DNA of 64,000 bases. It comes from Macrostomum hystrix. Its lineage: Eukaryota > Animalia > Platyhelminthes. This document shows positions 8,125 through 29,929 of the stretch, piece after piece; within the stretch, counting starts at the first letter, position 1; every line of letters starts with the position of its first letter. The stretch is taken from assembly GCA_950097015.1 (NCBI GenBank), contig CATNEN010000011.1:4836001-4900000 (forward strand), in the 5' to 3' direction. A program made the position numbers and the translations under genes. The notes under the pieces are model-generated. The model searched no databases. It had not been told where the DNA came from and saw nothing but the letters and a program-made list of their open reading frames with translations.

Positions 8125-8319
8125 GTTTGTAGGTATTGAACCTTCCAATTTGATGCTATGTTGCGCTATGAATTGCATCAGTTTGTATGTATCAAATTAA
8201 ATAAACTATTTCAAGAATTGCGTCGAAAACAAAGTAGTGTGTCTTACTAATGGCGTCTCCTAAGTGCGTCTCCCTAACTGATTGAAATGATAAGCCTATC
8301 TAGGCTGCAAATGATGGTC

Positions 8320-8530
8320 CAGCGCTTCCAAAGCCTGTGTACAACATGTCAGTCCATGGACTTGTGGCCGCAAAACCCACCGAAAATTCTCTCCCAGTTG
8401 ATGCTGGTACCCATTTTACAGCTGGGGAAACTGAAGCAAAATTGAATTATGATTTTCTTCAAGCACCCAAATATTGCATCGCATATGGACTGAGTTCATT
8501 CGGGCTATGTACTCTGAAAGCAAGTACGAT
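8320..8530 (+). mobile_element. Family B dispersed repeat (CORE/MIR-like)
   Basis: gcgcttccaaagcctgtgtacaacatgtcagtccatggact, then gctggtacccattttacagctggggaaactgaagc, which resembles the MIR core cccattttacagatgaggaaactgaggc. Confidence 0.6.
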
Positions 8531-8961
8531 GAATCTGCTGCCTGTACCTTGGATTAGTATGAAGGCCGTCACATTTCTTGGAAATTATACTGCCTGCCTT
8601 GTCAAAACCCCGTCCAATGTCTGACAATAAAGTGCAAACGAAAAAACGGAGAGATGGCGAGACTTTTCTGAAAGATGTACTCATCCGTCCAGCACTGTAC
8701 TCATTTCTCCAGTACAATAGAAAAAGGGATACTTTTAACTGTTTTTTCAGTACTGCTTTCGGCGAATGAACAATAGACCAAATAAATATAAGCTTTCACA
8801 GCTATCTGCCACAGCAAAATGCGTCTATCTATTTCATTAGCAGTTTATATATTGCTGTATAATTTAAATTCAACACTAACAAACAAGAAAAAGTAAAAAA
8901 ACGCGTGAGTTTTCGTTATAAAACAGAAGCTTCACAGACAACAACTTGAGAAGTCAGGACT

Positions 8962-11709
8962 ATGACACTCTCATTGGACCAACTGGAGTGTCACTTCACG
9001 TGGTGTCCTGAGAAAGGAAGCACCAAGTCTGCAAACATCGAGGATGTGATTGAGAAGACTCAGAGAAAGATTGAACGCGAGCCGCACAAGAAAGCCGCGC
9101 ACCTCGCCACGCTGGCCTACCTGCACACCATAAAGCCGAAGGTGGACTACGCAGAAGCGAAAAAATGTCTCGAGATAGCTCTGAGCATCGATGAGCAAGT
9201 TCAGATGGAAGGCCAACAGGATGACAATGTGTCGAGTGAGTTCGTCATCAGAGCCGACATGCTTCACCTTGAGCAAAAGAGAAAAGGGAAGAAGCCTCTA
9301 AAGTCTGGTGAAATGAGGCAAGAATTGGAACTTCTGAACAAGCTGTGGCAGGACCCAGTCAACAGAGCTCGAGTGTTCGGAGTGAAGGGCGTTGCCTTTG
9401 ACTGTTTCGGTCCGAAGAAGTATTGTGAAGGCGTCAAGGCCTTTGCGGCGGCACGTGAGACGCAGCCAGATAATTTCAACTGGCTTTACGGTGAGGCATA
9501 TTTAAGAGCTCGATGTGACAGGCAGACGGCTAAGAAGGCTGCAGACAATGAGCAGGTGGAACTATGGATAAAGGCCAGACTTGTTGGTGAGCCGAGGGGA
9601 CTTACGTCTGCTACTTTTTATGCGAATTTCGCTGAAGCAATTTTGCATAATATGAAGCATGGAAAGCAATGTCTTGAACTGGCAGAGAAGGCCATGGATT
9701 TTTTCCTCAACTATTCAATTGAGAAGAAAAAACTAGATCCAGTCGTGTACATTATCTGCTTCAAGCTTTTTCGACATCTTAACTGGCGCCAGTTCAACAC
9801 GAAGGATCGTCATGAAGACTTGATGAAGGACGCTTTAAAAACCGCTGCTTGCTTGGGAGATCCCGCGTTTTATCTGGATCTGTCATACGCAACAGACAAT
9901 AAAGAAAAGGCTATCGAATTCCTGATGGCTGGTAAAAATCTGGCTCCTGATCCTGGAAATCACTGGATTGAGCTGCGGATTTTAGAGCTTCGGAGTGACG
10001 AATGGGACGCAGACCGAATCCTCGCCAAATTTGACTCGCTGAGAGACACTTTCTCGAGTTACGATAAAAACGTCTCCGTCATAGAGTTTTGCAAAGCTCT
10101 GTATTTGATAAAACGACGCGAAACAAAGCCGGCAATGAGCTCATGTATTGAAGCTGTTGAGGCGAATCCATCGTTAGAACTGGTATCAAAAGGAAAGAAG
10201 ATTGACTTTTTCCAACACATTTCTGACCAGAAACATAATCACGAGGAGTACCTGGCCTGGTACGCTGCCAATGTCATAAACCTGGCTGCAAAATTGAACT
10301 TAGAGTCTCTCTACAAGACTGCCCTGTCCCGCGATGCTAGCAATGAGTTCGCCCAGGAACATCTGGGCCGCTACTACATGAAGACGGGACAGTTCGAAAA
10401 CGCTGCCAAATGCTTTAGGGAGCTGCCAGCCGAAAATGACAACAGACGCAAGCTGCTCGCTGAAGCAATTCTCGAAATGACTGCAGCTGCTGCTGACTTG
10501 GACCTCCTGCAGGAGTGTCTCAGCCTTGGCTGCATAGATGCAGCTCCGAAAATTTTTGATGCCCTGAATCGAGAGAAGGAAAAGCAGGACACTGCTCGCA
10601 GAGTAATGGACGAAGCTTCAAATAGTGGCAGCGATGTTGGGCTAAAACCGTTGTTCTTCAGCACTCAGTTGTATGAGCTGTGCGCTGAAGTGGTGGCCAC
10701 GCTACAGGATTCGAACAGCTTTTCGCTTTATAAGACAGAATCGACTAGTGATCTTTTCGAGTTGGTGAAGCAGAGGATTGCCAAGTTTTTAGAGCTGGAC
10801 CAGCTCATGAGCACAGTGGCATCGACTCGGCCCAACGATGGCACAGCTGACCGGGGAAACCTGATGAGGTCGAGCAGACTACGCTTAACTGAGCAGCGTC
10901 TTGAGAAAGGAAGCAAAACTCAACAACAAATGCAGGAGCTCAACAATCTCATCGTATCAGTACTGAAGGAGTCGAAGGAGGTTCTAGACCGCTCTTTAGC
11001 TGTCTTACTTTCTCGGTGCAAAAAAGAAGTCAAGGAAACAAAAAATTCGACACGAGCTCGTAAAGAGAAAGATAAAAAAAGCAAAAATACCGATCACTAT
11101 TATCCTCATGCGTTCAACAAAATCAAGAAGCAGCTTGGTAGTGCCTACCAAAAAGAACTCAACAAGCTGGCTTCGGATGGTCAGGATACAAAAGCTTTCG
11201 AGCGGAACTCATTGATAGCCGCCTTTCTTAAAGAAGCAAAGGATTTTCAAACCGAACCGGGAACTACTTTGGTATCGCTTGAGAATGTTCGAAGATGTCT
11301 TTTAGATGCTGTCTCCGAAATCGACCCAAACTTTCATCAGCAGAAGAGCACCAAAGATATATTTGAATTCATGGCGAGCCGTGAGCACAGGATCCTGTCT
11401 AAGGAGGACTGCTGGATAGTACGCTGGATCTACCTGGCAAATAGCGAGAAGCACTCGGATGAAATTATAGTGGCAGAGCTGGAGGAGCAGCTGCGCTCTG
11501 ATTGGTCGGGATGCGGTCAGTGCGACAGGACTGCGTACCGCCTGGCGCACCTCGCAGCGGAGTTCGCTGAAGAGACCTGGGCCGTGTTCTCAGCTGGAAA
11601 TCGGTCAGCAGGAAAGGCTGATGCCGAAGCTCCTGAAAGCGCTATTCTCCAAGGAGCCGAAGGCCAAAGTGTGGCGTCTTGTCGGCAAAGCCCAAAAAAT
11701 GAGGACTGA
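8962..11709 (+). CDS. IFIT-like TPR protein A, 915 aa, intronless, with an extra C-terminal helical domain (HEPN-like candidate)
   Basis: N-terminal LDQLECHFTW is the IFIT hallmark; HLATLAYL; KGVAFDCFGPKKY...AFAAARETQPDNFNWLYGEAYLRARCD parallels IFIT5 KGWALLKFGGKYY...[27 protein letters not shown]; later TPR-like repeats (LGRYYMKTGQFENAAKCF). Confidence 0.85.
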   Translation: MTLSLDQLECHFTWCPEKGSTKSANIEDVIEKTQRKIEREPHKKAAHLATLAYLHTIKPKVDYAEAKKCLEIALSIDEQVQMEGQQDDNVSSEFVIRADMLHLEQKRKGKKPLKSGEMRQELELLNKLWQDPVNRARVFGVKGVAFDCFGPKKYCEGVKAFAAARETQPDNFNWLYGEAYLRARCDRQTAKKAADNEQVELWIKARLVGEPRGLTSATFYANFAEAILHNMKHGKQCLELAEKAMDFFLNYSIEKKKLDPVVYIICFKLFRHLNWRQFNTKDRHEDLMKDALKTAACLGDPAFYLDLSYATDNKEKAIEFLMAGKNLAPDPGNHWIELRILELRSDEWDADRILAKFDSLRDTFSSYDKNVSVIEFCKALYLIKRRETKPAMSSCIEAVEANPSLELVSKGKKIDFFQHISDQKHNHEEYLAWYAANVINLAAKLNLESLYKTALSRDASNEFAQEHLGRYYMKTGQFENAAKCFRELPAENDNRRKLLAEAILEMTAAAADLDLLQECLSLGCIDAAPKIFDALNREKEKQDTARRVMDEASNSGSDVGLKPLFFSTQLYELCAEVVATLQDSNSFSLYKTESTSDLFELVKQRIAKFLELDQLMSTVASTRPNDGTADRGNLMRSSRLRLTEQRLEKGSKTQQQMQELNNLIVSVLKESKEVLDRSLAVLLSRCKKEVKETKNSTRARKEKDKKSKNTDHYYPHAFNKIKKQLGSAYQKELNKLASDGQDTKAFERNSLIAAFLKEAKDFQTEPGTTLVSLENVRRCLLDAVSEIDPNFHQQKSTKDIFEFMASREHRILSKEDCWIVRWIYLANSEKHSDEIIVAELEEQLRSDWSGCGQCDRTAYRLAHLAAEFAEETWAVFSAGNRSAGKADAEAPESAILQGAEGQSVASCRQSPKNED

Positions 11710-13527
11710 AGTACTCCGTATGACAGAAGCCACCTTGCGGACACAAACTTGTTTTTTATCCAGATTATCATTGAGCCTAGACATGAAAAGCAACTATGTC
11801 GATTACATTTTTTTCTGAAAACCGACGACTTATAACTGTAGCTTTTGCCTAAAATTGGTTCTTTTATTATTTACTTTTTTTAGCGTTTGGTAAACTCCTT
11901 TGTTTTTTATAGTATGTCGTTGTGTCTTTTTGAGTTGTTTTAGAAATATTCAGTTATATTTTTTGTCAGGCCGTACCATTTTATACATCCCCGGTACATT
12001 CTATAGCCAATGAGCTTGCAAGGCACATGCTGCATATGATAGCATAGACTTCAAGGTCGAAAAACAATGAATACTTTAAGTCAATAAGCATCGGACTAAA
12101 ACAGGTAGAGGGGGTAGGTATTCGTTTATTGTACACAATAACTACCACACTTAGACTACCAAACTGTAATCAATTAATTTTTTTACAATTTAAGAAATTA
12201 ACTTTTAAAAGTATTTTTACAATCCTGTGATCTGCAAGCCTGTAATAATACACTATGTTATCTTTAGTCGTAAATGATTTATTCTAAAAATAGCTTTTAA
12301 TCCAAATATTTCTTTTTGTTTTACGCATTGTCGTAGCAAACCACATTTCTATTTTACAAATAGTTACACACTCTAGCCGATTGCTCAAGGCAACTGCCCC
12401 CTTTGTTATGAAAAACTGGTGTCACCTCTCTTCATTTTCATAACCATCAAACGACATTACTAAGGCGAAATTGAAAGCATGACAATCTTGTTTGTTGTGT
12501 TTAAACAGTGTTTTTTTCCTAGTTGTCGACATTCTACTCAATAATTAATAGAGAGAAAAAAGCCAGGACAAATTGATTTTGCTAATTATAAGTTATTATA
12601 TGCAGATCGAAGCTTTTCGCTCCTTTAAAAGATTAACACACGAATAAAAGATCAGCAACTCGCAGACTCATGCGATCAGAATTAACCAAGTTTGCAAAAA
12701 TCTAGCGGAGGAGGGTTGGCTGTTTCGTGAGCTAAGCACGGTCATTGATGAATCTGTAGCAAATCGTAAAATTGTTATTGTATCGTACTTACTAAAAATA
12801 GTTTTCTGTCGTAGAAATTTCTATAATTTTCTTAGACTTTCTTTAGGAATTGTTTGCATTCCAATTTATTGATATGAAATAGATAAATTATTTAAAGCAT
12901 ACGCATTTACTTTGTTTGTATCAACCCTAGTCTGTACGAAATTAGTTATATTATATTTGTTATAATTGTAAAGAACTTTCCAGAAAGCCGTTAATAACTA
13001 TAAATATACAGGAGGTACCCAGCCTAAAGTTTAACCGTATTTTTACTACTTCAAACACAACCTTAAAACTACAAAAGAACCACCGCCTTTACGCCTTGCA
13101 TTTATTAAAACACCTCTACAAATCCGCTAATCAACAGGATTTACCTTTACGCACTGCTAACCGACAATGACAGTACACACATCAAACTTGACAAAGCTAA
13201 CAGAGGCACTGGAAAGCAAAAGACTAAAACAATAAGCAAAAACTTTAAGATGTACAGCTCGAGTTTTCGACGCGTTTACAGTTTAGACAGAAAATGACCA
13301 CAAAATGTTAGCATCGAAGGTAAAGACAGAAATGTATCTACACTTACACACGAAATTTACTGGACTTTAAGTCGAAGTGAATGATGTGAAATTTCTAGCG
13401 AGCAGATAATTTTTATTCCAAACAGTACGTTAGTATCATATTGATAATGTCGTTTTCATAAACGTTTAAATATTTTAAATATGGCCTTAAAATCAGAAGC
13501 GGTACTAGAGCCTTCAGAGATTTACTG

Positions 13528-14073
13528 TTAAGTTGCATCGTCAGTAGAGACAATTGGATGATTCGGTGGTTCAGGAAATTTGTAAGGCCCACTGGTTTCC
13601 GTTGTTTTCAGATCCAACATTCTTCCGGTGCTGGCCACTAGAAGCAGGGCAGCAGCCAGAGCAAATGCACTCACCAAGCCAGTAACCACCCACACAAGCC
13701 ATTGGGAATCTTGGGATGCAGAAACGGTGCCTTCGCGAGCCTCAATGAAGCATGCTTTTTCCAACGGACCTATTTTTAATCGCTCTTTATTGACACCATT
13801 TTTCGGTGAACCGAACCTGGAGGCGCGAAGGCCCGAGCAGGAGCAGTTAGCCTGCCACGCCGTTGACAGGCCGATACGCAGTCTAGCAGGAAGGACGTCC
13901 AGTCTCGCTCTCAGTAATTCCCATCTAGGACATGGAAAGCAGAGGCATCGCTCCTCGGCTCCCGGAAAGGTGGTACCGACGCTGCACGGCAGCTGCTGTT
14001 CAGCTGTAGATCCTTGATGCGCCAACAGGTGATGGAGTAGGATTGTTTTCAGAATTAACAGCAACTTAGTCAT
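13528..14073 (-). CDS. Small type I membrane protein, 181 aa: signal peptide, Cys-rich ectodomain, one TM helix
   Basis: MTKLLLILKTILLHHLLAHQG leader, 7 Cys, WLVWVVTGLVSAFALAAALLLVA TM segment. A short in-frame intron near 13770-13820 is possible. Confidence 0.65.
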   Translation of the reverse strand: MTKLLLILKTILLHHLLAHQGSTAEQQLPCSVGTTFPGAEERCLCFPCPRWELLRARLDVLPARLRIGLSTAWQANCSCSGLRASRFGSPKNGVNKERLKIGPLEKACFIEAREGTVSASQDSQWLVWVVTGLVSAFALAAALLLVASTGRMLDLKTTETSGPYKFPEPPNHPIVSTDDAT

Positions 14074-14547
14074 GTCTCAGCTGCAGGCCTTCTAACCTGG
14101 CAGTGTCTTGTAAAGCAATTTAAGCGCACTTATGACTATATGAATACAGGGCGCAAATTATATTTTCAACATGTATTCTGTAGTGGCGTGAGCTTTGCTA
14201 TGCTAGGTATTATGCTTGTCCGCGTACACTTGTGCAAGCGCTGCACACTAGCGCGCAATGGTCACACGTGCAGTCATTTTATCTCTTGCAATCTTGATTA
14301 ATGCTTTAAGAGGCTTGAAATTAAACAAATGCACATATTTAACGATCTGTCAGCTTTTTTGCACTGCCATTCGCAGTATAAGCGATATTCCGCATTATTT
14401 GGAAGAGTGAAAATTAAAGGAAAAAATGCTCGAAATTCTTTCAGAATCTGACTTCAGAAACCTTCAGTTTCATAACAACAAGCTCTTCAATTGAATGCAC
14501 ATAGCGCAGTCTTTACCAATGTAGAGTTATTTGTGGCAACTTGGAAA

Positions 14548-14790
14548 TGGCACATCATTTGGTGACACTAGACCCGCAGCCAGCGAGAAGGCAGTTCTGC
14601 CCATCTCGCTGACTCCTGAGCACACACTCACACAGGTGTGCACACCTGCCCCTAACTTTCTCATCGTTAGACGGTGCACTCTCTCACTGTGCCTTGGCCG
14701 CTGCGCCCCAAATGAGTTGGCCTCGTGGCGAAATCGAGGCCAGGGACATTGGTGCGAGAGGCACCTGCAATACCCTTGCTTAGGGCTCGT
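14548..14790 (-). mobile_element. Family A tRNA-derived SINE copy
   Basis: High similarity to 21560-21840 and to the reverse complement of 46360-46530 and 59600-59880. Confidence 0.75.
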
Positions 14791-15202
14791 TCACATTGCT
14801 ATCAAATGAATAGTTTTTGGTGTGAACTTGCTTGATGTTCAAAAAGATGCTATATAGTTATTAAAAAGGAATGCACAATCATCGTATTTTACAGCCTCGT
14901 TTGATGCCAAATTTAACCAACATTTAGCAATGCTTACTTCTGCAGCGTTATCATTTTTGGTACCCCTCGCCAGTGCGTTTAATATTTCACTTTTATACAT
15001 TCAGTTCTGAGTAATGTTTATATTTCGCAGCTTCGACAAGTTTCGGTTTCAAGTTGAGTGAGGTGTCGTCTCCATGTGATTTTCTATTCCATCCAAGCAT
15101 TAGTAGGAGAACTTCTTTTTCTTAAATAGAGTTCGTCTTATTACGAGCGTACTTTAGGAAGTAAATCTGCAGTGATGTCAATAACTCATCAGCAATATTT
15201 CG

Positions 15203-15355
15203 GGACGCATCATTTCAACATACAATTAAAGTCTTTGTATGTGTACGCATCATTTCAACATACAATTAAAGTCTTTGTATGTGTACGCATCATTTCAACA
15301 TACAATTAAAGTCTTTGTATGTGGACGCATCATTTCAACATACAATTAAAGTCTT
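15203..15355. repeat. 40-bp tandem repeat, about 3.8 copies
   Basis: acgcatcatttcaacatacaattaaagtctttgtatgtgt repeated in register. Confidence 0.95.
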
Positions 15356-15899
15356 ACATACAAAACAAAGAGCACGAGCTTTGTGTTTAAAATTAGAGCA
15401 AGAACTGTCCCGACATAAACAGGTATAATGTTGCTGCATTCCGTTTTATAGTGTCGTAAACAAAAATTGTTAAATGTACGAGCACGTGTGCGTGTGACTA
15501 AATCAGCGCATTATTGTGTCGATACACATCTTAGTATTGGAAACAGTATCAAATAGCTGATCTGCAGAAGCGGTTCAGTCCATGTATTGCTATTTTATAC
15601 ATTTATATTAACAAATACGGTACACACCAGTTAAAAGTTTGTTTGTAGCCATCATGAATATTGCTACCTTAACGAACTTGCAAACTTCATGCTTAGAAGT
15701 CCGGATGTATATGTATTTAATTCATTATCTAGAATACAGGAAAGGTGGTATTTTCAGAACGAGCATGGCAGTAAGTGTTCTGAAAGCGATAGATAATCAG
15801 TTCTTAAAGCTTTTGCCAGTATTTATTGACTACGATTTCTCCATTTGCATTCTCATTTGACACGTGGTATTCTCCGACAAGCCGGAAGAATAAGGTACA

Positions 15900-16109
15900 A
15901 TGTCTAATGTTATTTTCCCGTCGTCTTGTTCTGCATCGGCAGCTCTGGCGGCTCTGGTGGGTCTCGCGGTCTTGCTGGCGGAGTTGTCTCCGAAGCCCTG
16001 GGCTGTTGATTGTGGATGCAGGCTCCGTATACAAATCTGGCTCGAACCGGTTGATCCGGCCTTCTTAATTTATTATAGGTCTCGTCTTCAAAGCTATGAT
16101 GCTGCTTAG
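15900..16109 (+). CDS. Possible small secreted or membrane peptide exon
   Basis: GC-rich island with hydrophobic ALAALVGLAVLLAEL after a pyrimidine-rich cggcag acceptor-like site; start exon unresolved. Confidence 0.3.
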   Translation: MSNVIFPSSCSASAALAALVGLAVLLAELSPKPWAVDCGCRLRIQIWLEPVDPAFLIYYRSRLQSYDAA

Positions 16110-19100
16110 TATCGTTCTTCTTGTCTGAAGAAATTGTCGGAAGAAGCAATGACCCTGGTGTACATGCCCAGTTGGGCCAAGTGTACAGCAAAGAGGCCGT
16201 ACAGCTGTTCAGTCCGTGGACTGGAGAGGCCGCCAAACCCCCCCAAATTTCCCCGCTTCTACGCAAATTAATCGCCTAGTTACAAACTGCCAATTAGCTA
16301 GCTGTTACCAATGTCATCAACTTACCCATTGGAAACTGCTCCGAGGTAGGACTTGAACTAAGGATAAATTTAATTCCACTTTGGAATACAATACGCAAGT
16401 CAGAATTAAGGAAGTTGATCTTAACTTCTAAATTTACTGTCTGTAAAATAGTTCATATTTCTCAGCGAAATCGATTCTATTGGCAAGCTGCTGCTGTCCA
16501 ATGTGAGGGCTTCAAAGCAGAGCCTGAATATTTCTACCATGACTGAAATCTAAGATATGCTTTAAATCGAGACACGTATAAAGGAAATTTATGGACGTTA
16601 TGAAAGACACCTGGTATGCAAAAACAATCCGTTACATATAGCTGACATGGTTACACATTGACATTTTGTGAGCAGAAAAATGGTGCAGATATTGGTGCTT
16701 TTTGCCACGAGACACCCTGACGGGAATCATTGAATATCTCGACGATGTCTTTATTTTGTAAATTCTGTTTGTTTTTGTTCATTGGAAAAAGCGGAAAATT
16801 TTCGCCCCGTTTTTGAATTGTCATGACGATTGGGGCAGGTAACGAGAGAGAGGTAAGAAAATAATAGGGCAGGGTGCGTCACGACAATTATAATTAATTC
16901 TCTTTGCATCAAGGAAATACGAGTTGCATTGTACTGAGGACTTGCCGCTTTATCGGCTGTGTTGTACGTGGGAAATTCCAATGCATGCTTCAGCAGTTAA
17001 TCCAGCAGTTTGTGGCAGCCTCTTAAGTCCACGGACGAAATAGCTGTACACAGCCTTTAAAAGCGCCTGTGACTGCCTGTACCAGTGTGCGACCCAACTG
17101 GGCTCGTATGTCTTATTTATTTTTAAATCAATCTGTAATATAGTTTTCACTATATAGCACAAAGCGTATTTCGAAATTTGAGCAGCAGGCGAGAACATCT
17201 TACAATTACCTTCGACAGGAACCTCTTCCGGGGTTCGACCCCGGGAAACGACTTTAAGTTGAGTCTGACTCAAATGAGGAAGCAATTGAGTCAAAATGTT
17301 TTATAGAACTGTTTTATAGAACCGGCTCAGAGTCTTTTAATCGCCAGTCATTGTGTCTTTCTGTGGCCCTGTTAAGTAGGTGTGTAGAAAGTAGTAAAAT
17401 ATGCCATTTGTTTAACGCGCTACTTAAAGTAATATTACAAGGAAACCTAAGCTGTAATTTGAATCTATTTTTAGGAATGAGTCATGACGACTAATATGCT
17501 ATTTTTAGAAACAAATACCGGTGACTTAAAACGACGGCTGCATGCATTGCTCATACTTCCATATATGGTAATGCTCACTTGAAAACCCCCAAAATGCAGC
17601 TGAACAAACAAGTTTGACCTCGCTGTGCAAATATTTATTCCCTAAGTAAACACACTGAACTAAAGCGGTTTTCCCCAAAAATCTACTATAAATACAAGTT
17701 AAAATTCAGACTCGGAGCGGTCCAACGGACTTCAAAACTTCTTTAAGAAGAAGAGGACTCATCTATGAGGAAAAGACAATTGGTAAGCGCTTTACTAGGC
17801 AGAGTTATTTATTGCTAACAATCGTTGTTGAATTGAACTAAGTTTACAAGAGCCGTCGATACATTTGAGAAAGGCCTCCTTGTTTCCTAGGATACATTCC
17901 TAGAGGATTATTGATTGATTGATTTGAATTATCCGTTATCGACAGAGATTTTAATTGTTCACTAGGTCGCACGTTTCTATTGTGAATTCTGAGCTCGAGG
18001 AAACCGACAAGTGATCTGATTCGCTCTCGTCCTTTGTTGGCCAACAGATGAAGTCGAGCGCAACAGACCGGATCGACTAGCCGCTGCCAAGAAGACAAAG
18101 AAGACAAGAAGACTGCAAAGACTCAAGAAGCAACAGAACCGAAACTTCAAGGTCAATCAGCAACAAGGAGAAGAAGAACCGCCGACTTACGAAGACCAAA
18201 GACTAGGCGCAACTAGCCATCGAGGAAGAAGAAACCACTGCAGTAAGTGTCACGTGACACGTTATAAATTCCTAGGCAATTCTTCCCCATTGTCTAGAAG
18301 TGGGAGCTTTGTGTGTCTGATCAACACACAATGTTACCTCTTCAGGTATTGCTGTCGCGACCTTGACCATTAACTTGAATTCTCACTTAATGTTACGGTC
18401 GTAGCAACATTGATTGTCTATGGCTGAAACAGTGGGAAAGGAAGTTACGATGCGTACACATGCGCTCGTGTTTGTTCCCTAGTTTGTTCCCTAGAATGTG
18501 TTGGCAAGCATGCCTATGGCCAAAGTTGGAGGGAAGAACCTGCACTTTTATTATAGTCATTGTTTAGAGGCTGACCCTTACTAATTTACTGCAGTTTGGG
18601 GCAACTATATAGTCCAGTGGATAGCAGAATAACAAATTCGAATTTAGACCTCGTATCTTCTGCTTCTACAACCAATCGTCATAAGGCCATAGGTTTGCAA
18701 GCGACCAGCTAGGCAGCGACGTCGGCATTGATATTAGATAAAATTGATCAGCAGGTCTTTGCCGCAAGTCGGATGTTTTTACCAAAGTGATCGACACTTA
18801 CAACATTATACAAACATTATATCGACATTATACAAACGCATTCGAGAAAAAATAGTTAAAATATTGTAAGCTCGAGTAATTATAGAAAAACGAAGTAATT
18901 GCAGCGATAAAGTAATGAAGTACAACTGCAGTGTAGTTCTGAACATAGAAAGTAGAAAGTACCGCGAAATATTTAACAAGTTACTTTGAGAACAAGACAT
19001 AATTTTTATCGCCATAACTCCAGTTCTATTATTTGCAAACAAGTTCGATTTTGAAACAAGGAAATTGTTAAAGAGCCAAGCGCAGGGAAATTTTGTTAAA

Positions 19101-19497
19101 GAACTTTTTTTCCACGAAAACGTAGGTAATTTCATGGAAGAAACAAGTGAAAAGTTAACGGTTTTTTTCAAAAGAGGTGGTGCATCAGAACTATTGTGCT
19201 GGGTGCGTTTCCTGCTTTGGACTTTCGAAATTCGAAATTAACTTTTGTTTTAAATGTTTCTAACAATAATGTATGTATATATGTACACATGTATGAATGT
19301 ATGAAAAATGACTCCTAATCCCTAATCTACATCTTGTGACGTTGTCACTTGTTGAAGGCGCCCCTGCAATATTACTCTATGCGTGACTATATGCTTAATT
19401 TCCTAATTATGTACTAGCTTGGGCCGTTTTAACTCATCGTATAATATCATCCAATTCTGTTAATTTATATTATTAAGTCAAATTATTAGTGCGCTAC

Positions 19498-19894
19498 TGT
19501 CAGTAACCATAAACGCATATCGCGCCATTCTAGCTATTTCATACGCGTATCTTAATGTATTTCCCCCCCCCGGCCAATGAGCGTGCGAGCTCTGGCTGGC
19601 CGGAAGTATCGATCGCTATGTTTTTCAGTCAGCCTAGTTTACTTAATCAAGGGCTTCAGGCCCGCTCGCGCTTCACTTTCTTTCTTTCATTCGTTCGTTC
19701 TTTCCTTCCTTCCGTCTAGCCATTCTCGCCCTTCTACGTTTCGTGCTGTGCCATTCTCTCACTACACTCCACTACATTCGGTTCTGTTCGTGTCCAACCA
19801 TCACCATTAACGAGCTCCTACGCCTTACATAACGCCCTGCTTGTCGACGTCCCAGTGCACCCAGAATAAAAGTGCTACCGCTACATCACAGACA
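19498..19894 (+). mobile_element. Possible solo LTR, about 397 bp
   Basis: TGTC...GACA ends, AATAAA near the 3' end, GC shift; the flanking 4-mers ctac/ttac match imperfectly. Confidence 0.4.
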
Positions 19895-21028
19895 TTACTG
19901 ACTCTGAATTGCCAAACTTACAAATGCCGCTGCTCTGACTTCGACTTCGTCCTTTGCGTTTTAATCGTCACAATCTCACGACTGTATGCATAAATAATGA
20001 ATTTCTTCAGTCCTCCGACTTGGGAGGCCACCAACACCCAGTAAATTTCTACCACACTTGGAATTCGTATTTTCTGCTTGGAGAACCTGGCTATTCAGAA
20101 CTGAGTGTCTTGCTTAAGAATGGTAACTATTTTTTTATTGGTTGAAATTGTGTGCTAGGGCTATATGTTATGATATTCAATATTTCACCGCTGTTATCAA
20201 AGAATTGTTACATGCGTGTTTAAACAATACTGGCTTTTATAAGAAAATCCCACCGAATGGCACCAAAGTTGTACCAGGGCGGATCTTACTGCTGCTGTCT
20301 CAATTTAATTGATATTTAGACTGGCGGTCCTTAAATGGGCCGTTTTAACTCCTCAATATGGTAGCGTATGTATTGCACGAGCGGTAATTAGGCAACTGTA
20401 TGCGTTTCCAGTCAATTAGGCGTCCCCGAGATTAGAGTTTAGCAGTTTCCCTTTTGTAATATTCTTGGTATTAATCTGAGTACAATTCTTAGTATGGTTC
20501 TTTAGAATAGTTCTGAGTATATTCCTCAGTGTTTTCCTCTCTTAAAATGAATAACACAAATCACCTCTTTTCAATGCACTCCTTTTATATCTTGGATAAA
20601 CACTTTCAAGCAACGACTTTCAACGACTTTCAAGGACTTTCAAGTTTACTCACAAAGTTTTTCAAGCTTTAATAACAACTACTACAAGGTTATTTTTCTG
20701 TCTGAAAATTGCGGCTATTTATACGCACAGGATTTCCGCATTTGTTAAAATGGCGGATTTTAGCAAAATAATATTTATACGGTAGTCATTAAAACAGAAG
20801 GATTTTATACAGTATTATTTTTATTACGGAAAAAATTAAAACGAATATTTTATTTTTTGGCGCATTTTCAACTTTAAGATTTTTTATGATTATTTTTATA
20901 AGGTAAAACGTATTTACAAAATGAAAACGCATCTACACGAAAACATACTATTACAATTGTAACTACCGGACTTCTAATTACTCATTATTAGTAATATATA
21001 TTAAAGCGACAGACCGCAGTCACAAAAT

Positions 21029-21478
21029 TCATTGTTTGTCTGCAGCATTTTGCTCATCGATTTCAATTATTACTGGTGGCTCGTCCTCTGTTGCTTTCTG
21101 GCCATCAGCTTTCAAAGTTTGCTCACTAGACGCAAATGCATTTAATCTGCTGTACTTAGCACCTTTGCACTTTCTGACAGCAAGCACACTAAAACCAATG
21201 GCTGCAGCAATAAGAAACAAGCTGCTAATAAAAACCGTGGTAAAAAGAGCTGGATCAAACGCGGCCTCTGATTGACCAATCAGACTCAGCCTCAATTCCG
21301 TTGACGCTGCACTGGCAGCAGTTGACAACGGCATTGCAGACTGGCTGTTTAGGTTCAGCGATGCTGCTGTTTCTTGATCGATCGGCTCTTCAGTGAGACT
21401 CGAAGCGTCAACTGCTTGCTGCACCGAAACCGCTGACCAAAGCAGCAAGACGGCAACATTGATTCGCACCTTGGCCAT
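21029..21478 (-). CDS. Small type I membrane protein, 149 aa from MAKVRIN
   Basis: Acceptor-like ttttcag just upstream of the ATG at 21478; leader VAVLLLWSAVSVQQAVDA; TM LFTTVFISSLFLIAAAIGFSVLAV followed by RKCK and KYSRL. The upstream part of the tracked ORF is SINE sequence. Confidence 0.7.
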   Translation of the reverse strand: MAKVRINVAVLLLWSAVSVQQAVDASSLTEEPIDQETAASLNLNSQSAMPLSTAASAASTELRLSLIGQSEAAFDPALFTTVFISSLFLIAAAIGFSVLAVRKCKGAKYSRLNAFASSEQTLKADGQKATEDEPPVIIEIDEQNAADKQ

Positions 21479-21559
21479 TGTCTGAAAATTTATTAAAGAG
21501 ACATTAACAGTTTTTGGTTTTAATAATAATAGTGGTACTTGCAGGAGGGCTGCGGGCAA

Positions 21560-21840
21560 TGGCACATCATTTGGTGACTTTAGACCCGCAGCCAGCGAGG
21601 AGGCAATTCTGCCCATTTCGCTGACTCCTGAGCAACACACTCACACGGGATGTGTACATCTGCCCTGACTTTCCCATCGTCAGGCAGTGTACACCCTCAC
21701 TGTGTCCTGGAGGTTGGCCCTCAAGGGCGTCAATTTCACGACAAGCCCACAAGCCTTCTCTCCGCGGCTGCGTCCCATATATACGTGACCTCGCCATGGA
21801 ATCAAGCTCAGTGACCTTTGTGCGAGAGGCAAACGGTTTA
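21560..21840 (-). mobile_element. Family A tRNA-derived SINE, near full length
   Basis: Collinear with the reverse complement of 59600-59880, including the head. Confidence 0.75.
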
Positions 21841-22859
21841 GACCGCTCTGACACTCACCCTCTAGTTTTGAGAATAATTAGAAACGTATTAATTTTCCGA
21901 GTTAGGACACAGCGACGAATATCAAACATCAACCATAGGCCTAGGCATTCCGGGCGTACGTGTAGTTACTAAATTTAATTATATACAGTTTCCCATAAAA
22001 TTTTCGAATGATATTTTACGACAGCACAAACAATGCTCTGGTGGGGCTGGGGCTGAGGCTGGGCATACTACTAGCATATCTTAAATACGTCCCTCAATTT
22101 CTGGAAAGTGAACTACCCTAGGCCTAACCAACAAAGTTGATTCGAAATAAGTAAAATACTCGTATCTGTGTATTTTTTCGATTTGCTTTACTCTTTTAGT
22201 TTCAGGCGAAAAATTCTTCGTACGTCAAAAATAAACAAGCAAATCGAACTGTATAATATGAAGTTGGGCCATATACTCGTACTTTCAAAATGAGGACATC
22301 CTACTGAAAAGCCACGTTAAACTATATTCAATAAATTAATAATATAGTTAATACCATACCTGATCCTCGTTTTGGCTTCGGTAAGCAAACAGCAATATAC
22401 TCAGTCCCGCGATACTGCCAACAAGAGCAATTAACAATGAGATGTTTCTTATTATCATTGTACTCGTAGCTTAAAATAAATGCTACCAGACAAAGAGAAC
22501 TTTCCAATTGTACTCAAAGCACTGTACTCACTTTGAGACTGTACTCACAGCATTTTTAGATTTTCTTTCTCTGGTTTTTAGTAAACTCTTTCTCACGTAC
22601 CTCTCATGTTTCTCACGTTTCTCACGTTTCTCACGTATCAAGTATCTCTTATCTCTTTTAGTAAACTCTTTCTCACGTAGATTCTTACGAAAGGTTCGTA
22701 CTTTCTCACGAACCTTAAAACTGAAGGACCTTTTTAGAAGGAAAATTTTATTCAAGTCTTCATTGCATTGGGGCTTTCTACAAAATGTATTCGTGAAATG
22801 GTCCCGAAAGATAAGCAAATGTGCCACATTCGCCCTCACGAAAGGCCCCCTAGCCTCGT

Positions 22860-22950
22860 CACAAAATAAATGTGGCCTCGCCGCGGAATCGAGCTCAGGG
22901 ACCATGGCGCGAGAGGCAAACGCATCACGAGCTAGACTGCTCTGCAACTC
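22860..22950 (-). mobile_element. Family A SINE head fragment
   Basis: tgtggcctcgccgcggaatcgagctcagggaccatggcgcgagaggcaaacg. Confidence 0.65.
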
Positions 22951-24283
22951 AACCCATCGTTACCCTGGAGTGCCCTGCAGAATCCACCTTAGAGAAACCT
23001 TGCTGGAAGTCTCTAAGTGATTGAATTGTGCGATGACGACTGTGTACGAAAGCTGTGTTCGTGCGTCTAAGGACGTGGATCGCCGCACGGCGACAATTAG
23101 TGGATTCCCAATGAATTCCAGCGAGTCGGAGGGTCTCTATCTGTCGACGAGTTCGTTGAAATTGATTTTGAGAATTTTCGCTGTGCCGCCTTATCAGGCT
23201 CCCATTCCGATCGCTCTGTTGTTGGACCACCCGTTTGCTTTGCTTGTAGTATCTTAAATAGAAATTTTTATTTAAATCTTTCAAGTCTTTTAAAGAAAGA
23301 CTTGCACTTGATATTAACAAATTTTATGTGGAAGGGATTTTTTTTCTTCCTTATGCTACGGCGCAATCATTGCCTTTAGAGTTTAAAAATATAACTCAAT
23401 TTTTTAGTACATGATATAAAAACATTATTTGAGCTATCGTTAAAGAGTAGTAAATATCAGAAAAATACATTGACTCAATCATTTTGAGTCTTTCTTTGGC
23501 ATTCCTGCTGGCATTTCTGGCGCTGAACCTCAAGCACGATCGGGACACAGAAAACGCCTTGGAGATAAAGGAGATTTTACTAGGCCTCATAAATCCCAGG
23601 CGAGCTAGAAATTCGACAGTGCGAAATGTCTTGCGCAATATTCTGCTTCAGCAGTAACTTTTTTCATGAAATTTTTTTTCAAAAACTTGTTATGAAACTC
23701 ATTATTAATTGTCTTGCAGTGTCTAACTCCTGTAGAGTTAGTGTCTTGTATTTGTTTCAGAAGGTTCGTAACCTCTATTTTCATTTTGGATCATCAATTT
23801 TGCGAGTATGTGTTTCAATTAATTAATATATATATCAGGTAGTTCCGCATTACTTTAGTTCCATATTTGCAGTCCTATACAACTGGATTTTCCAGCCAGA
23901 CAATTGCATCAAAGTGTACTGTGAATGTACAAAATACCGAGTACATGTTGAGTTGGGTTGTCTCTCCCGGATAAGGTAAGAGATATTTTCCCCGAGAAGT
24001 AGAACAATATTGTACAGTGGGTAGTAATTAAATCTAGCAGTACCAAGAAAGCAAATAGCTGACAGAATTTTACGGAAAAATCTAAGAAATTCATTTGACT
24101 CACGCGAGTAGCACGAACAAATATGGTGAATGTTTGACTCAAAAATATTTGAGTCAATTTTATAGCATCTAAGAGGCGGCAAACTCTTGTGTAAGAAGTT
24201 CCAAATTTTTGTTCTTCCGGATCGATGCGTTTCCTGAGCGAGCGACCATAAAAATTTCAACGCCCGAGCTCGCAATCGACTGT

Positions 24284-24758
24284 CTCGAGTGTCCATTTGT
24301 TTGGCAACCCGAAGCGGGTAGCACCAAGAGTTAACCTTGACGATGTGATAAAAAACATGCAGATAAAAATCGAACGAGAGCCTCTCAAGAAAGTGGCCCA
24401 TCTAACGACTCTAGCATACCTTTTCATTCGAACTACACGGGTGGATAGAGCTTTGGATAGAGCCAGCTCAGAAAGCCATTCTCGGAGTGAAGGGCGTCAC
24501 ATTCGACTGTTTCGGTCCGTTGAATTACGAAGCCATTTGTGGATCGAGCTGCGCATTGTTGAGCTACTGGTTGGAACTGAGAAGAATTCAGAAATAGTAA
24601 CCAGGTTGGAGTCGATTCGAGAAAGTTTTTCTAAGTATCCGAAAAATGTGTCTGTCGTCGAGTTTAATAAGACCTTGCACTTGATGAGAATGGGAAAGGT
24701 GCTGGACGCAATGAACTCATGTATTGCCGCTGTTGACGCCAGACGGGGATCTGTGTGA
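24284..24758 (+). pseudogene. IFIT-like paralog C, frameshifted and internally deleted
   Basis: LECPFVWQPEAGSTK, then a frame change to NLDDVIKNMQIKIEREPLKKVAHLTTLAYL, then ILGVKGVTFDCFGP in another frame, then HLWIELRIVELL...KNVSVVEFNK. All are collinear pieces of genes A and B with large gaps. Confidence 0.85.
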
Positions 24759-25640
24759 GATTGCTAAGCAGAGAAGTGAGGCACTTCTAGAAGTAGACTA
24801 CCCAATTATGGGCACTGGCTTTAGTTAAGGATTCAAATGGACTTCAGAGCGAGTCACGAGCTGGTAGAAGGGTCGGAGCTAAATCCTTTTTCTAAATCCT
24901 TTTGCTAAATTCTCCTTGGCGAATCTTCGCCTTGAGGCGGGGAGTCACCTTTACTACGGTGGGAGCGAGTAGTGCAGAGCGGGGACGCAGTCCCGATTTC
25001 TAGTACAGCAAGAAAACACTACGATAGTTCGTTGCTAGGGAGATCTCCTCCATTGACATTGGGCAGATGGAATTGTTCTCTCTCTGTTTCACGTTTCTAT
25101 TCCCTTTCGCACTTTAGTTGTTGTTTCACATCGATCGGCCTCCATCGGGCATCTTCAGGCGGGGTCTAAAAATGGGCAAGAAAAGTATTTGCAATTGCAT
25201 AAATTCAAGCTAACTCGCAGAAAGTAAGCGATAATATTTGCTTTGATTTTCCATATAAAAGTCTAGATGATAAGTTTTCACTGATAGCTAACTAAATATA
25301 AAAGCTTCGCCCAGAAATGTGTCGTCTGAAACATTAAAAACACTTTCTTAAAGTCGAGCAAATTTCCTGGAAACGTTTCGAGACGAGAGACGAGACGAGA
25401 ATGTGTCGCCGTCTGAATGCGCGACATTAAGTACAGCAGTAAAATTAGCTGTACTTTATTCTAGTGAAAACTGCTTTGCTCTTCTGTACTGCACACTGTA
25501 CACTGAAAGCCACTGTACTAGCTGTCTATCTAATCTAAGTTTGCATTTGAAGTCTGGGGGTACAAGTCTAGCCTGTCTGGTAAAATATTTATTCTCATCC
25601 AAACAAGCGAAATTAAGAAGTCTGCAAAACAATTGAAAAC

Positions 25641-28600
25641 ATGTCGGCTCTTGAAAAACTTGAAGAGCTGGAATGCCACTTCACCTGGCTCCCAGAGGAT
25701 GATAGCACGAACACAAGCATTGATGACGTCATAAGAAAGACTGAAAAAAAGATTGACCGCCAGCCTCACAAGGAATCGGCTCATCTGACCACTCTAGCCT
25801 ACCTGTATACTCGCACAACGGTTAAGAAGTTCGGTTTGGCTCACAAATGTCTGGACGACGCATTGAAGATCGATAAGCAAATCCGGGACGATAAACAGGA
25901 AGATGTGCAAGTGTCTAGCGAGTTTGTCATCCGAGCCAACATGCTGCACCTCAAGCAGTTGGAAAAAGGACAAAACAGAAAGTTGAAGCCTGCAGAAATC
26001 GCTCCGGAAATGAAAGGACTCAACAGCATATGGAGCGACTTCAACAGCCGAGCCCGGGTGTTCGGAGTCAAAGGTGTCACGTTCGACTGCTTCGGCCCCA
26101 TGAAGTATCCGGTCGGAGTTCTTGCCTTCGCTGAGGCGTCAAGGCTTCAAGCGCACAATTTCAACTGGTTGTACGGTGAGGCGTTCCTCAGAGCTCGATG
26201 CGACAGACAGGTGGTAAAGAAGTACGCCGACAGTGCTCAGCTTGAGCTGTGGAGAAGGGCCAGAGAAATTGGTGAGAAAACAGAACAAGCAACTCAAAAT
26301 GCAACCTTCTACACCAATTATGCTGAAGCCATTTTGTATAACAATGGAAATGCTCAATTGTGCTGCAGACTGACGGATATTGCAGTCAAGATTCTTAGCA
26401 GAAAGTCACAGGAAGAGAAAGAGAACTCCCATGTGGACTTCAAGATTTGTCTAAAGATTTATCGGTACCTCACGAAGCGAGGGAACTTAGACTGTGAAAG
26501 CCGCCGACGAACATTGTTTAAAGAAGCAGAAAAAGTGGCAATGCTGCGCGAAGACCCAGACTTTTGGTTAGCGGAAGCTAATGAGGCTAATGAAACGGGA
26601 GATCGAGATAAAGCAATTGAACTGCTTGAGAAAGGCAAGGGATTAGCAGGTGAGCCGGGCCACATATGGCTGAATCTTAGACTTTTGGAGCTACAAATGC
26701 ACGCTTTGACAAAGCAACAAGTCCTTAATGAGTTTGTCTCCATGAGAGAAACTTTTGGAGTCTATACAAAGAACGTTTCAGCCATTGAGTTCCACAAGGC
26801 ACTGTACTTAATTAAACAAGGCGATACAACTGAGGCCTTAGAGTCATGCGTTGCTGCTTTAGAGGCTGATCCCAAAGTGAGCCAGGTCTGGTATAACAAA
26901 AGGAAGGAATTCTTCCAATGTCTGATTAAAAAGACTGCCGGCTTCGAGGAATATGTGGCCTGGTTTGCTGACAACCTCGGTGACTTCAAAGTTTCGTTGA
27001 ACATTGAGGCTCTCTTTCTAGACTCGCTGAATAGAGATGCTAAAAATGAGTTCGCGCTTGAGCATCTAGGCCGTCATTACATGAAACAGCGCCGATTAGA
27101 CGATGCTTCCGAATACTTCAGGAAGCTGCCTGACCACGTTGAGTGCAAATACAAGCTACTCGCTGATTCGCTGCTTCAAGACCCGAATGCTAGCTTCCAG
27201 AAGCTGCGGGAGTGTCTACAGTGTGGTTGCATGGATGCTGGACCGATGCTTCTAGACATTCTTGAGCAAAGAAAGGCAAGTCAAAACACTGCTAAGATAG
27301 TCATCAACGATGTCGTGAGTCGAAGTGCAGTGGCTCAGGATCCGTTGTTCTTCAGCACTCAGTTGTATGAGCTGTGCGCTGAAGTGGTGGCCACGCTACA
27401 GGATTCGAACAGCTTTTCGCTTTATAAGACAGAATCGACTAGTGATCTTTTGGAGTTGGTAAAGCAGAGGATTGCCAAGTTTTTAGAGCTGGACCAGCTC
27501 ATGAGCACAGTGGCATCGACTCGGCCCAACGATGGCACAGCTGACCGGGGAAACCTGATGAGGTCGAGCAGACTACGCTTAACTGAGCAGCGTCTTGAGA
27601 AAGGAAGCAAAACTCAACAACAAATGCAGGAGCTCAACAATCTCATCGTATCAGTGCTGAAGGAGTCGAAGGAGGTTCTAGACCGCTCTTTAGCTGTCTT
27701 ACTTTCTCGTTGCAAAAATGAAGTCAAGGAAACAAAAATTTCGACACGAGCTCGTAAAGAGAAAGATAAAAAAGGCAAAAATACCGATCACTATTATCCT
27801 CATGCGTTCAACAAAATCAAGAAGCAGCTTGGTAGTGACTACCAAAAAGAACTCAACAAGCTGGCTTCGGATGGTCAGGATACAAAAGCTTTCGAGCGGA
27901 ACTCATTGATAGCCTTTCTTAAAGAAGCAAAGGATTTTCAAACCGAACCGGGAACCACGGTGTCAACAAATACGCTTGAGAATGTTCGAAAATGTCTTTT
28001 AGATGCTGTCTCCGAAATCGACCCAAACTTTCATCAGCAGAAGAGCACCAAAGATATATTTGAGTTCATGGCGAGCCGTGAGCACAGGATCCTGTCTAAG
28101 GAGGACTGCTGGATAGTACGCTGGATCTACCTGGTGAACAGTGAGAAGCACTCAGCCGAGATTCTAGTGGCTGAGCTGGATGAGCAGCTGCGCTCTGATT
28201 GGTCGAGAGGCGGCGAGTGCGATAGAACTGCGTATGACGTGGCGCATCTGGCAGCGGAGTTTGCTGAAGAGACCTGGGCCGTCTTCTCGTGTGAAATCGG
28301 AGCTGCTGTATGCACCGGCGTGCATTCAACGACGGTAGTTGCTAGTGTCGGAGATTCCAGAAATTCCGAAAATGTAACAATTACCGCCACCGTTAATGGA
28401 AGAGATGCTACTGGTGCCAGAGATGCCACCGGCATTGAACACGCTACTTGTGTTGGAGCAACAGCCAGCAGCGTTGCGCAAGTTTCATTGAGCACTAGTC
28501 TTGACTTCAATGCCGGCGAAAGAGACGACTCGACGACTCGAATCGACTTCCAAAGCAGAGGCGGCAGTGCCTTTGGCGATGGTCAACGCTTACGAGGCAG

Positions 28601-29027
28601 AGGGAGAGGCTTCAATCAGCACTTCCAAGGCAGAGGCGGCAGTGCCACCGGCGATGACGAGCGCTCACGAGGCAGAGGGAGAGGCTTCAATGGACGCTTC
28701 CAAGGCAGAGGCGGCAGTGCCACCGGCGATGACGAGCGCTCACGAGGCAGGGGGAGAGGCTTCAATGAAGGCTTCCAAGGCAGAGGCGGCAGTGCATTTG
28801 GCGATGACGAGCGCTCACGAGGCAGAAGCGGCAGAGGGAGAGGCTTCAATCAATACCCCCAAGGCAGAGGCGACAGTGCCTTTGGCGATGACGAGCGCTC
28901 ACGAGGCAGAGGCGGTAGGGGGAGAGGCGTCAATGCGCGCTGCCATACCGATGGAAGGAGTGCTAAAGCTACCGAAACCGGTGCCGAGGTACGAGGCCAA
29001 TGGGAATTTGCGAATCGAGAGGACTGA
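25641..29027 (+). CDS. IFIT-like TPR protein B, 1128 aa, intronless, with HEPN-like candidate domain and RG/RGG repeat tail
   Basis: LEELECHFTW, HLTTLAYL, KGVTFDCFGPMKY, FNWLYGEAFLRARCD; collinear with gene A; five 25-28 aa RG-rich repeats at 28548-28940. Confidence 0.85.
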   Translation: MSALEKLEELECHFTWLPEDDSTNTSIDDVIRKTEKKIDRQPHKESAHLTTLAYLYTRTTVKKFGLAHKCLDDALKIDKQIRDDKQEDVQVSSEFVIRANMLHLKQLEKGQNRKLKPAEIAPEMKGLNSIWSDFNSRARVFGVKGVTFDCFGPMKYPVGVLAFAEASRLQAHNFNWLYGEAFLRARCDRQVVKKYADSAQLELWRRAREIGEKTEQATQNATFYTNYAEAILYNNGNAQLCCRLTDIAVKILSRKSQEEKENSHVDFKICLKIYRYLTKRGNLDCESRRRTLFKEAEKVAMLREDPDFWLAEANEANETGDRDKAIELLEKGKGLAGEPGHIWLNLRLLELQMHALTKQQVLNEFVSMRETFGVYTKNVSAIEFHKALYLIKQGDTTEALESCVAALEADPKVSQVWYNKRKEFFQCLIKKTAGFEEYVAWFADNLGDFKVSLNIEALFLDSLNRDAKNEFALEHLGRHYMKQRRLDDASEYFRKLPDHVECKYKLLADSLLQDPNASFQKLRECLQCGCMDAGPMLLDILEQRKASQNTAKIVINDVVSRSAVAQDPLFFSTQLYELCAEVVATLQDSNSFSLYKTESTSDLLELVKQRIAKFLELDQLMSTVASTRPNDGTADRGNLMRSSRLRLTEQRLEKGSKTQQQMQELNNLIVSVLKESKEVLDRSLAVLLSRCKNEVKETKISTRARKEKDKKGKNTDHYYPHAFNKIKKQLGSDYQKELNKLASDGQDTKAFERNSLIAFLKEAKDFQTEPGTTVSTNTLENVRKCLLDAVSEIDPNFHQQKSTKDIFEFMASREHRILSKEDCWIVRWIYLVNSEKHSAEILVAELDEQLRSDWSRGGECDRTAYDVAHLAAEFAEETWAVFSCEIGAAVCTGVHSTTVVASVGDSRNSENVTITATVNGRDATGARDATGIEHATCVGATASSVAQVSLSTSLDFNAGERDDSTTRIDFQSRGGSAFGDGQRLRGRGRGFNQHFQGRGGSATGDDERSRGRGRGFNGRFQGRGGSATGDDERSRGRGRGFNEGFQGRGGSAFGDDERSRGRSGRGRGFNQYPQGRGDSAFGDDERSRGRGGRGRGVNARCHTDGRSAKATETGAEVRGQWEFANRED

Positions 29028-29929
29028 AGCTATTCGTAATTTTTTAAGTACCGAGTGTGAATTGTTTTTTTGACTTTGGCTGTGATTGCTCCGAATAGAG
29101 TAGCGACGTAGTCTTTTGTTTGCGTCAATCCGTAACTGGTATTTATTTAGTATCTCTAATTATTATAAGCAATGAAGCTTATAGTTTATTTTTGTTTCCT
29201 GAAGTTCTTTAGCTATTTATCTATTATGTCGTCTTTCGGGATTTATCATTAATACGATTGGCACAGAGTTATAGCATCGATCCTTCGCACTTGGTTGACT
29301 TATCTAGGTAGGATTAAGACTTGGTAGGATTATCTTCGATAATTTTAAACACACATTCCATGCCGACTAAAGCATTAGTACGTTCCTATAGTATTACTTA
29401 AACTGACAAACAGTTCGACTCGTATTGGTGATAAATCCTTTTCGATAAGCCGATAAAAAAATTCGGCAACGCTGCAAAGCTGATCAAGTTCACAATTAGT
29501 TTTACATATATATAATTTCCATCACAAAAAATTCCACGTCCAGTTTTTGTGATTTGTTGTCGATTCGAAAACAATGCTAAAATTGTATTTTATGATGAGC
29601 ACGCGTGTATTAAACAAAAAATTCTCTATAAATTTTGACTGAATATGTTTTGCTTATTTAGACACTATTTTAGAAATTTGATTATTTCTCTATAATTTGG
29701 AGATGATATATTTATAGAGTTACTGTATGATGTTGGTAACTTTTTATTTTCCCATTTTTAGCTTTGCTTGTCCCTGAAATATTGTACTAAGCATGCTGTA
29801 CTGTATATGCACAGTATTTACTGTAGCCTAAAATCAAATCAAATTATATTCTTTCTTTTTTATCTTGATAAACTCTTGACAATTAAAAAGAACTTAAAAA
29901 ACTTTGCAAACTTGAAAGTTGATGACAGT

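Follow-up and report, generated by a model that had tools for sequence, protein, structure and literature searches.

Introduction

IFITs are textbook interferon-stimulated genes, and flatworms are a lineage not known to have interferon. IFIT1 and IFIT5 are monomeric tetratricopeptide repeat (TPR) clamps that bind the 5′ end of RNA (PDB 4hor, 4hot, 5udi), and the family has been described as restricted to jawed vertebrates, arising together with interferon (PMC3688568). Here we describe two genes, A and B, in a 64,000-nucleotide (nt) stretch of the flatworm Macrostomum hystrix (GenBank assembly GCA_950097015.1, contig CATNEN010000011.1, positions 4,836,001 to 4,900,000 of the forward strand; the whole of this stretch is called the window), each encoding an IFIT-like head followed by a conserved all-helical C-terminal domain, the tail. 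An original prediction, made by inspection of the sequence, had read them as single-chain RNA sensors coupled to an RNase effector; an IFIT-type clamp joined to a conserved extra domain, in an animal that lacks interferon, is upheld, while the RNase coupling is a hypothesis for which we found no positive evidence.

Whereas IFITs are TPR-only proteins of ~470–490 amino acids (aa), the products of genes A and B (915 and 1128 aa) are twice as long as IFIT1 and IFIT5, with ~370 extra conserved residues, an RGG tail in gene B and intronless genes, and they share ~17–20% identity with them over structurally aligned residues. Two further groups of described proteins bear comparison. HEPN domains (ST0689, 1wol; HI0074, 1jog; the MNT-HEPN toxin, 8xdj; KEN of RNase L and Ire1) are likewise all-helical with long antiparallel helices, and the conserved N-x-x-K-H of the tail recalls the HEPN R-N-x-x-x-H, while SKI3/TTC37 and CTR9 are long alpha-solenoids of comparable length. 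The literature that we searched describes no IFITs from flatworms or any other invertebrate, and no IFIT–HEPN fusion. Some invertebrate proteins have received ‘IFIT-like’ names by automatic annotation, and the head alone is thus not unheard of; what is new here is how strongly the fold matches, and the conserved domain to which the head is fused.

An IFIT-like TPR clamp in Macrostomum

Genes A and B begin alike (...LDQLECHFTW and ...LEELECHFTW, respectively) and share a KGxxF.CFGPxxY...AF..A....[PA].NF.WLYGEA.LRARCD block. The two predicted intronless open reading frames (ORFs) with LECHFTW starts and an IFIT-type block are present, both on the plus strand. In a single-sequence search, human IFIT5 is the best natural PDB sequence match to gene A (E 2.3e-5), with gene A residues 5–186 aligned to IFIT5 13–188, LECHFTW falling on LECHFTW (IFIT5 16–22) and ARCD on YRLD. 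A profile of 13 family members searched against the PDB sequences recovers IFIT5 at E 1.3e-6 and IFIT1 at E 6e-4, and designed consensus TPR proteins alone outscore IFIT5. Within the LECHFTW helix the C, F and W are conserved in 11 of these 13 members. HMMER places the block on IFIT5 144–188 (KGWALLKFGGKYY...EPDN...YRLD) and sets gene A R184 on IFIT5 R186, in agreement with the by-eye alignment of the ARCD arginine in the original prediction. The head alone and the family profile returned nothing new from word-indexed protein searches, a blank whose meaning is limited by the length window and word filter of the tool.

The fold match extends well beyond the region of sequence similarity. A full-length AlphaFold2 model, built from a 31-sequence alignment (predicted local distance difference test, pLDDT, 83.4), was compared with the PDB by Foldseek, where IFIT5 with triphosphate RNA (ppp-RNA) ranks first (E 5e-8, template modelling (TM) score by target 0.55) and IFIT1 reaches a TM of 0.60. 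Among Swiss-Prot models the first rank in the structure search goes to IFIT5 13–480, covering query residues 5–504, and an ESM Atlas shape search gave a TM of 0.71 to a chordate IFIT1B-like cluster. Language-model features of residues 1–505 point the same way, the ten best clusters all being chordate IFITs (0.95–0.96, with more than 200 shared features). The next Foldseek matches over the whole length are SKI3, CTR9 and NAA25; those to SKI3/TTC37 and CTR9 have a TM of 0.12–0.24 and a root-mean-square deviation above 25 Å, a generic TPR similarity only. The whole-length clamp fold of IFIT1 and IFIT5 is thus clearly nearer than that of other TPR proteins. Because IFIT5 and IFIT1 lead the structural matches, far above other TPR scaffolds, and because sequence similarity to IFIT5 covers the N-terminal 180 residues, the predicted IFIT identity of the head holds. 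Sequence and modelling together strongly support true homology between residues 1–505 and the monomeric clamp of IFIT1 and IFIT5.

The residues that we take, from the 2013 IFIT5 structures, to form the 5′ triphosphate or cap pocket are E33, T37, Q41, K150, Y156, R186, Y250 and R253. Of the 13 family members, 10 have R or K at the equivalent of R186 (R184) and seven retain the equivalent of Y156 (Y154). From the modelled fold we infer that the head probably binds the 5′ end of RNA.

A conserved domain outside described families

A tail beyond the TPR region had been foreseen. It comprises ~370–380 conserved residues (aa ~506–877) and not the ~300 first estimated, gene B adding a further 243 aa, and residues 560–880 of gene A lie at nt 10639–11601, the earlier placement at 10940–11590 being wrong. 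The first ~110 aa of the tail form TPR/14-3-3-like hairpins and the remainder a long-helix bundle; a model of residues 500–885 is confident and all-alpha (pLDDT 81, predicted TM score (pTM) 0.84). An alignment of 27 tail sequences (A2, ~26% mean identity) contains, in order, the motifs L.ECL.LG..D, FFS...YE.CA, RI..FLE, R..RL..TK, VL.....LD and YPHA, and its most prominent block is a core of 85 residues, F.ARREH.I..KE.AW...W....N..KH...E..L..YR...TAYDVAH.AAEFAEQT. In gene A the core positions are RE(H) 807–809, W818, W822, N827-x-x-K830-H831, Y859, A-H863 and AAEFAE 865–870, and near-invariant in two alignments (A2 and A5) are R807, E808, W818, W822, Y859, A862, A865, E867, F868 and E870. The tail motifs first picked out by eye (VLKESKEVLDRSL, HYYPHAF, IFEFM, WIVRWIYL[AV]NSEKH and LAHLAAEFAEE) are present and conserved in the relatives.

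NSEKH had been placed at the position of the HEPN R-X4-H motif, with the arginine replaced. That replacement is real, gene A having Ala and gene B having Val five residues before the NSEKH histidine, and it is family-wide: N-x-x-K-H is retained in 24 of the 27 tail sequences, while an arginine 5–7 residues before its histidine occurs in just three, leaving 24 that lack it, and R-x4-6-H is found in no other aligned column in more than five sequences. Pfam gives no HEPN family for the 27 members even at E up to 10. Searches of the tail against Pfam, NCBIfam, PADLOC, PHROGs and PDB sequences and profiles (phmmer and profile search) yielded no credible match, and Foldseek against the PDB, AFDB clusters and BFVD found nothing below E 0.1 except an M. 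lignano homologue. In a Foldseek-independent VIA search the tail model was divided in two, and ESM Atlas feature searches returned only sub-threshold bacterial ‘hypothetical’ clusters. Taken together, motif count, profile searches and structure searches give no support to HEPN membership or to the predicted HEPN-like assignment. The tail is a new conserved all-helical domain, outside any described family and without the HEPN catalytic motif, and the domain family carries no annotation in public databases.

Two other affiliations were considered and rejected. Kinship with DUF1722/YbgA (PF08349) was suggested by the UniRef name of P0002. In Pfam the family matches two M. lignano proteins only, P0002 (27.3 bits) and P0003 (18.3 bits), genes A and B giving no match; aligned by hhalign with E. 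coli YbgA the family has a probability of 0.05, and BLASTP found nothing. The public name of P0002 (BOX15_Mlig031348g1), ‘DUF1722 domain-containing protein’, derives from this 27-bit match, which lies in a coiled region. A bacterial or viral origin of the tail was likewise discarded: searched with its most conserved peptide pattern, 185,579 bacterial and archaeal genomes (one per GTDB species) and the JGI metagenome contigs yielded no relative, and the bacterial helical family to which the tail had been likened did not appear. BFVD, PHROGs, NCBIfam and PADLOC were all blank.

Gene B continues for 243 residues past the shared tail (aa 886–1128), with 22 RG, 5 RGG, 21% Gly and 15% Arg and a repeat unit of 25 residues in 4.8 copies (Tandem Repeats Finder). 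This is an RGG/RG box, which gene A lacks and in which M. lignano P0001 and P0018 likewise end. RGG boxes are known RNA-binding, condensate-forming motifs, and the RGG tail therefore fits an RNA-related role. The 190-aa ORF at 28501–29073 (+) is another reading frame of the 75-nt RGG repeat of gene B and not an independent gene.

Relatives and distribution

A phmmer search with gene A residues 555–885 against 1.84 billion representatives gave 24 matches, all of them either M. lignano paralogues or ORFs on long, high-coverage contigs of the ENA assemblies ERZ25074608 and ERZ26859043. On the ENA contigs the family members are flanked by Pao-type retrotransposon, ZBED and integrase ORFs (L005 1361–8415, L006 3620–4288). 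Because of the Pao retrotransposon and ZBED neighbours, we regard these contigs as animal DNA in assemblies filed as metagenomes. Several matches are full length with an ECHFKW-type start, which argues that the fusion of head and tail is old and shared and not an accident of assembly. Genes A and B are tandem paralogues (64% identity across ~880 aligned residues) in a family seen so far in Macrostomum and these two ENA animal assemblies.

Among public sequences the closest are M. lignano proteins listed as hypothetical. BOX15_Mlig030191, Mlig031348, Mlig010163 and Mlig019237 (P0001, P0002, P0011/P0027 and P0018, respectively) have the same family and architecture as genes A and B, and their annotation consists of a generic TPR and the doubtful DUF1722 label only. 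P0001 is the gene B orthologue, complete with RGG tail, at 72% identity over the full length and 80% in the head. In P0018 (BOX15_Mlig019237g1) no IFIT-like head can be recognised before the tail domain, and ~500 aa of RGG repeats come after it; if this gene model is complete, the tail is an independent module. P0004, a 570-aa ORF on an ENA contig, holds two near-identical tail modules in tandem, which reflect either a duplication of recent date or a fault of assembly.

Gene conversion between the tails

Along a sliding window the heads of A and B have 44–70% nucleotide identity with third codon positions that look saturated. The heads are ~48% identical, or ~57% in the comparison with the ~98% of the 790-nt tail tract. 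These 790 nt of the tail are nearly the same in the two genes, third positions included, and identity falls off after 11437 (Table 1); by megablast, 10648–11604 pairs with 27342–28300. The tract is 77% identical to M. lignano P0001 vs 56% to P0002, and it carries a basic insert in common with P0001 that is missing from P0002. Since the tract is of the B/P0001 type, gene A must have received a copy of a B-type tail once the lineage had parted from M. lignano: the gene A tail was recently overwritten through gene conversion. The P0001 and P0002 tail types are just ~57% identical, unlike the homogenised tails of A and B, and the homogenisation is therefore specific to this genome. Diverging heads with a homogenised tail are the pattern expected where a module for recognition is coupled to one that stays constant, and to that extent suggestive.

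Expression

Three small runs of one organism (X2–X4) contain 96–97% of the sampled words of gene A. Their contigs span 8829–10677, a 790-nt unitig at 10648–11437 that is common to both transcripts, and 11408 onward, so that gene A is covered from 8829 to 11848 without a joint; the upstream stretch 8435–8768 has zero coverage in any run. The loose end at 10648 continues into gene B's own upstream codons, which means that both genes are present in these runs, and the depth of the unitig (34) is about the sum of its branches (20.7 and 12.7). The contigs support intronless mRNAs beginning ~125–135 nt upstream of the ATG, and in these runs, which we read as RNA, genes A and B are transcribed unspliced and without introns. 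Evidence for expression consists of this baseline presence in the contigs of X2–X4 only.

Possible function

The reading that we think probable pairs an IFIT-type clamp for the ends of single-stranded RNA with a new helical domain, probably not nucleolytic, which gives the paralogues a common output. The central pocket of the head would hold the 5′ end of a single-stranded RNA, as in IFIT1 and IFIT5, and the invariant tail would supply one output for all paralogues, most likely partner binding or self-association. The basic insert and the RGG repeats may make extra RNA contacts, RGG tails adding affinity for RNA or condensates, and the protein might sequester or mark RNAs instead of cutting them. 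A defence role is plausible, and a ‘non-catalytic adaptor’ is only the more cautious reading of the tail.

Several observations weigh against this reading. The middle of the clamp (gene A residues 185–450) has no sequence match to IFITs, the similarity being confined to the first ~180 residues, and equivalents of IFIT5 Y250 and R253 cannot be mapped by sequence there. Four pocket residues are changed, IFIT5 K150, E33, T37 and Q41 aligning with Cys, Asn, Val and Thr, respectively; because several triphosphate contacts have changed, specificity could differ, and the ligand of the head may not be that of IFIT1 or IFIT5. The arrangement of the domains relative to each other is uncertain (pTM 0.65 for the full-length model), and an enzyme, too, might well show the string of conserved polar residues found in the core (R, E, H, N, K, H, Y, H, E, E). 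Lastly, runs X2–X4 lack a label, and we took them for RNA because of their size and the gap in coverage between genes.

The changed pocket residues would also fit a housekeeping scaffold for ribonucleoprotein (RNP) assembly or RNA processing, comparable to SKI3 or CTR9, in which the IFIT fold reflects shared ancestry only. Both genes occur at moderate depth in the contigs of unchallenged-looking runs, general RNP proteins typically have RGG tails, and SKI3, CTR9 and NAA25 are the next whole-length Foldseek matches. The low TM of the SKI3 and CTR9 matches, however, the confinement of the family among the 1.84 billion representatives to Macrostomum and two ENA animal assemblies, and its history, with numerous diverged paralogues, one decayed copy and conversion between genes, a pattern commoner in conflict genes, make such a role rather unlikely.

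We give a similarly small chance to the tail being an undescribed, non-HEPN enzyme or signalling domain that acts on the bound RNA or triggers a downstream response, in a new kind of sensor–effector fusion. The conservation of R807, E808, W818, W822, N827, K830, H831, Y859, H863, E867 and E870 within 80 aa of sequences ~25% identical overall is what such a domain might show, gene conversion holds the tail constant while the heads diverge, and P0018 has the domain without an IFIT head; against this, the tail matches no catalytic family or fold, and the same residues could equally line a protein–protein interface. The boldest reading, with a similarly small chance, is that flatworms possess a genuine pre-interferon IFIT-type 5′-end RNA clamp hard-wired to a new effector. 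The tail core would then be where an undescribed module acts or signals, either to target RNA or to raise an alarm, and the paralogues would pair sensor heads that diverge with a single tail held uniform through gene conversion. That the tail is instead a degenerate HEPN domain, whether still active as an RNase through an unusual set of catalytic residues or dead and serving as a pseudo-HEPN in RNA binding or dimerisation, which would make a one-chain sensor–effector of each protein, is very improbable given the motif counts and the blank Pfam, Foldseek and bacterial searches above.

A flatworm protein that combines the IFIT signature with the complete fold of IFIT1 and IFIT5 moves the origin of the RNA-sensing clamp far back, and the extra domain offers a testable handle on what the IFIT clamp was partnered with before interferon. 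Macrostomum is a laboratory flatworm in which RNA interference is in use, and loss-of-function tests look feasible. Macrostomum lignano was found in 2025 to carry at least six Mx genes, pushing back the origin of Mx as well (PMC11789081).

Layout of the locus and neighbouring features

The flanks of genes A and B have no mutual similarity. Between the genes lies the relic of a third copy, whose pieces match gene A aa 10–64, 121–154 and 335–401 at 47–53% identity (tblastn) and are fused in a single 153-aa ORF ~900 nt upstream of gene B. The original prediction mentioned neither this relic nor the RGG repeats of gene B and the close match between the two tails.

Table 1. Coordinates in the window of genes A and B and of their parts.
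Feature	Position	Strand	Basis or remark
Gene A, intronless coding sequence, 915 aa including stop	8962..11709	+	Uninterrupted ORF
Gene A residues 1–505, IFIT1/IFIT5-type TPR clamp (strongly supported); LECHFTW at aa 8–14	8962..10476	+	
Gene A residues 506–877, conserved all-helical C-terminal domain	10477..11592	+	Model, homologues and alignment
Gene-conversion tract, gene A	10648..11437	+	~98% identical to gene B 27342–28134; 82–84% onward to 11604
Tail core of highest conservation, gene A aa 795–877	11344..11592	+	Near-invariant alignment columns; stretch common to all 24 phmmer matches
NSEKH pentapeptide, gene A	11440..11454	+	Put at the HEPN motif position by the original prediction
Relic of third paralogue, internally deleted	24291..24740	+	tblastn pieces vs gene A
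Gene B, intronless coding sequence, 1128 aa; orthologue of M. lignano P0001	25641..29027	+	Uninterrupted ORF
Gene B counterpart of converted tail region	27342..28300	+	megablast
RGG/RG box, 4.8 copies of 75-nt repeat, gene B	28546..28912	+	Tandem Repeats Finder

A short way upstream of gene A lies an ORF of 152 aa (7666–8124, +) that has a single hydrophobic stretch and is covered by contigs of its own in runs X2–X4 (7600–8234). The uncovered stretch upstream of gene A divides the two, and the ORF looks like a separate small expressed gene. Farther along, a G+C-rich block at window positions 50000–54000 (0.54–0.55 vs ~0.42 around it) contains ORFs of 209–373 aa on both strands.

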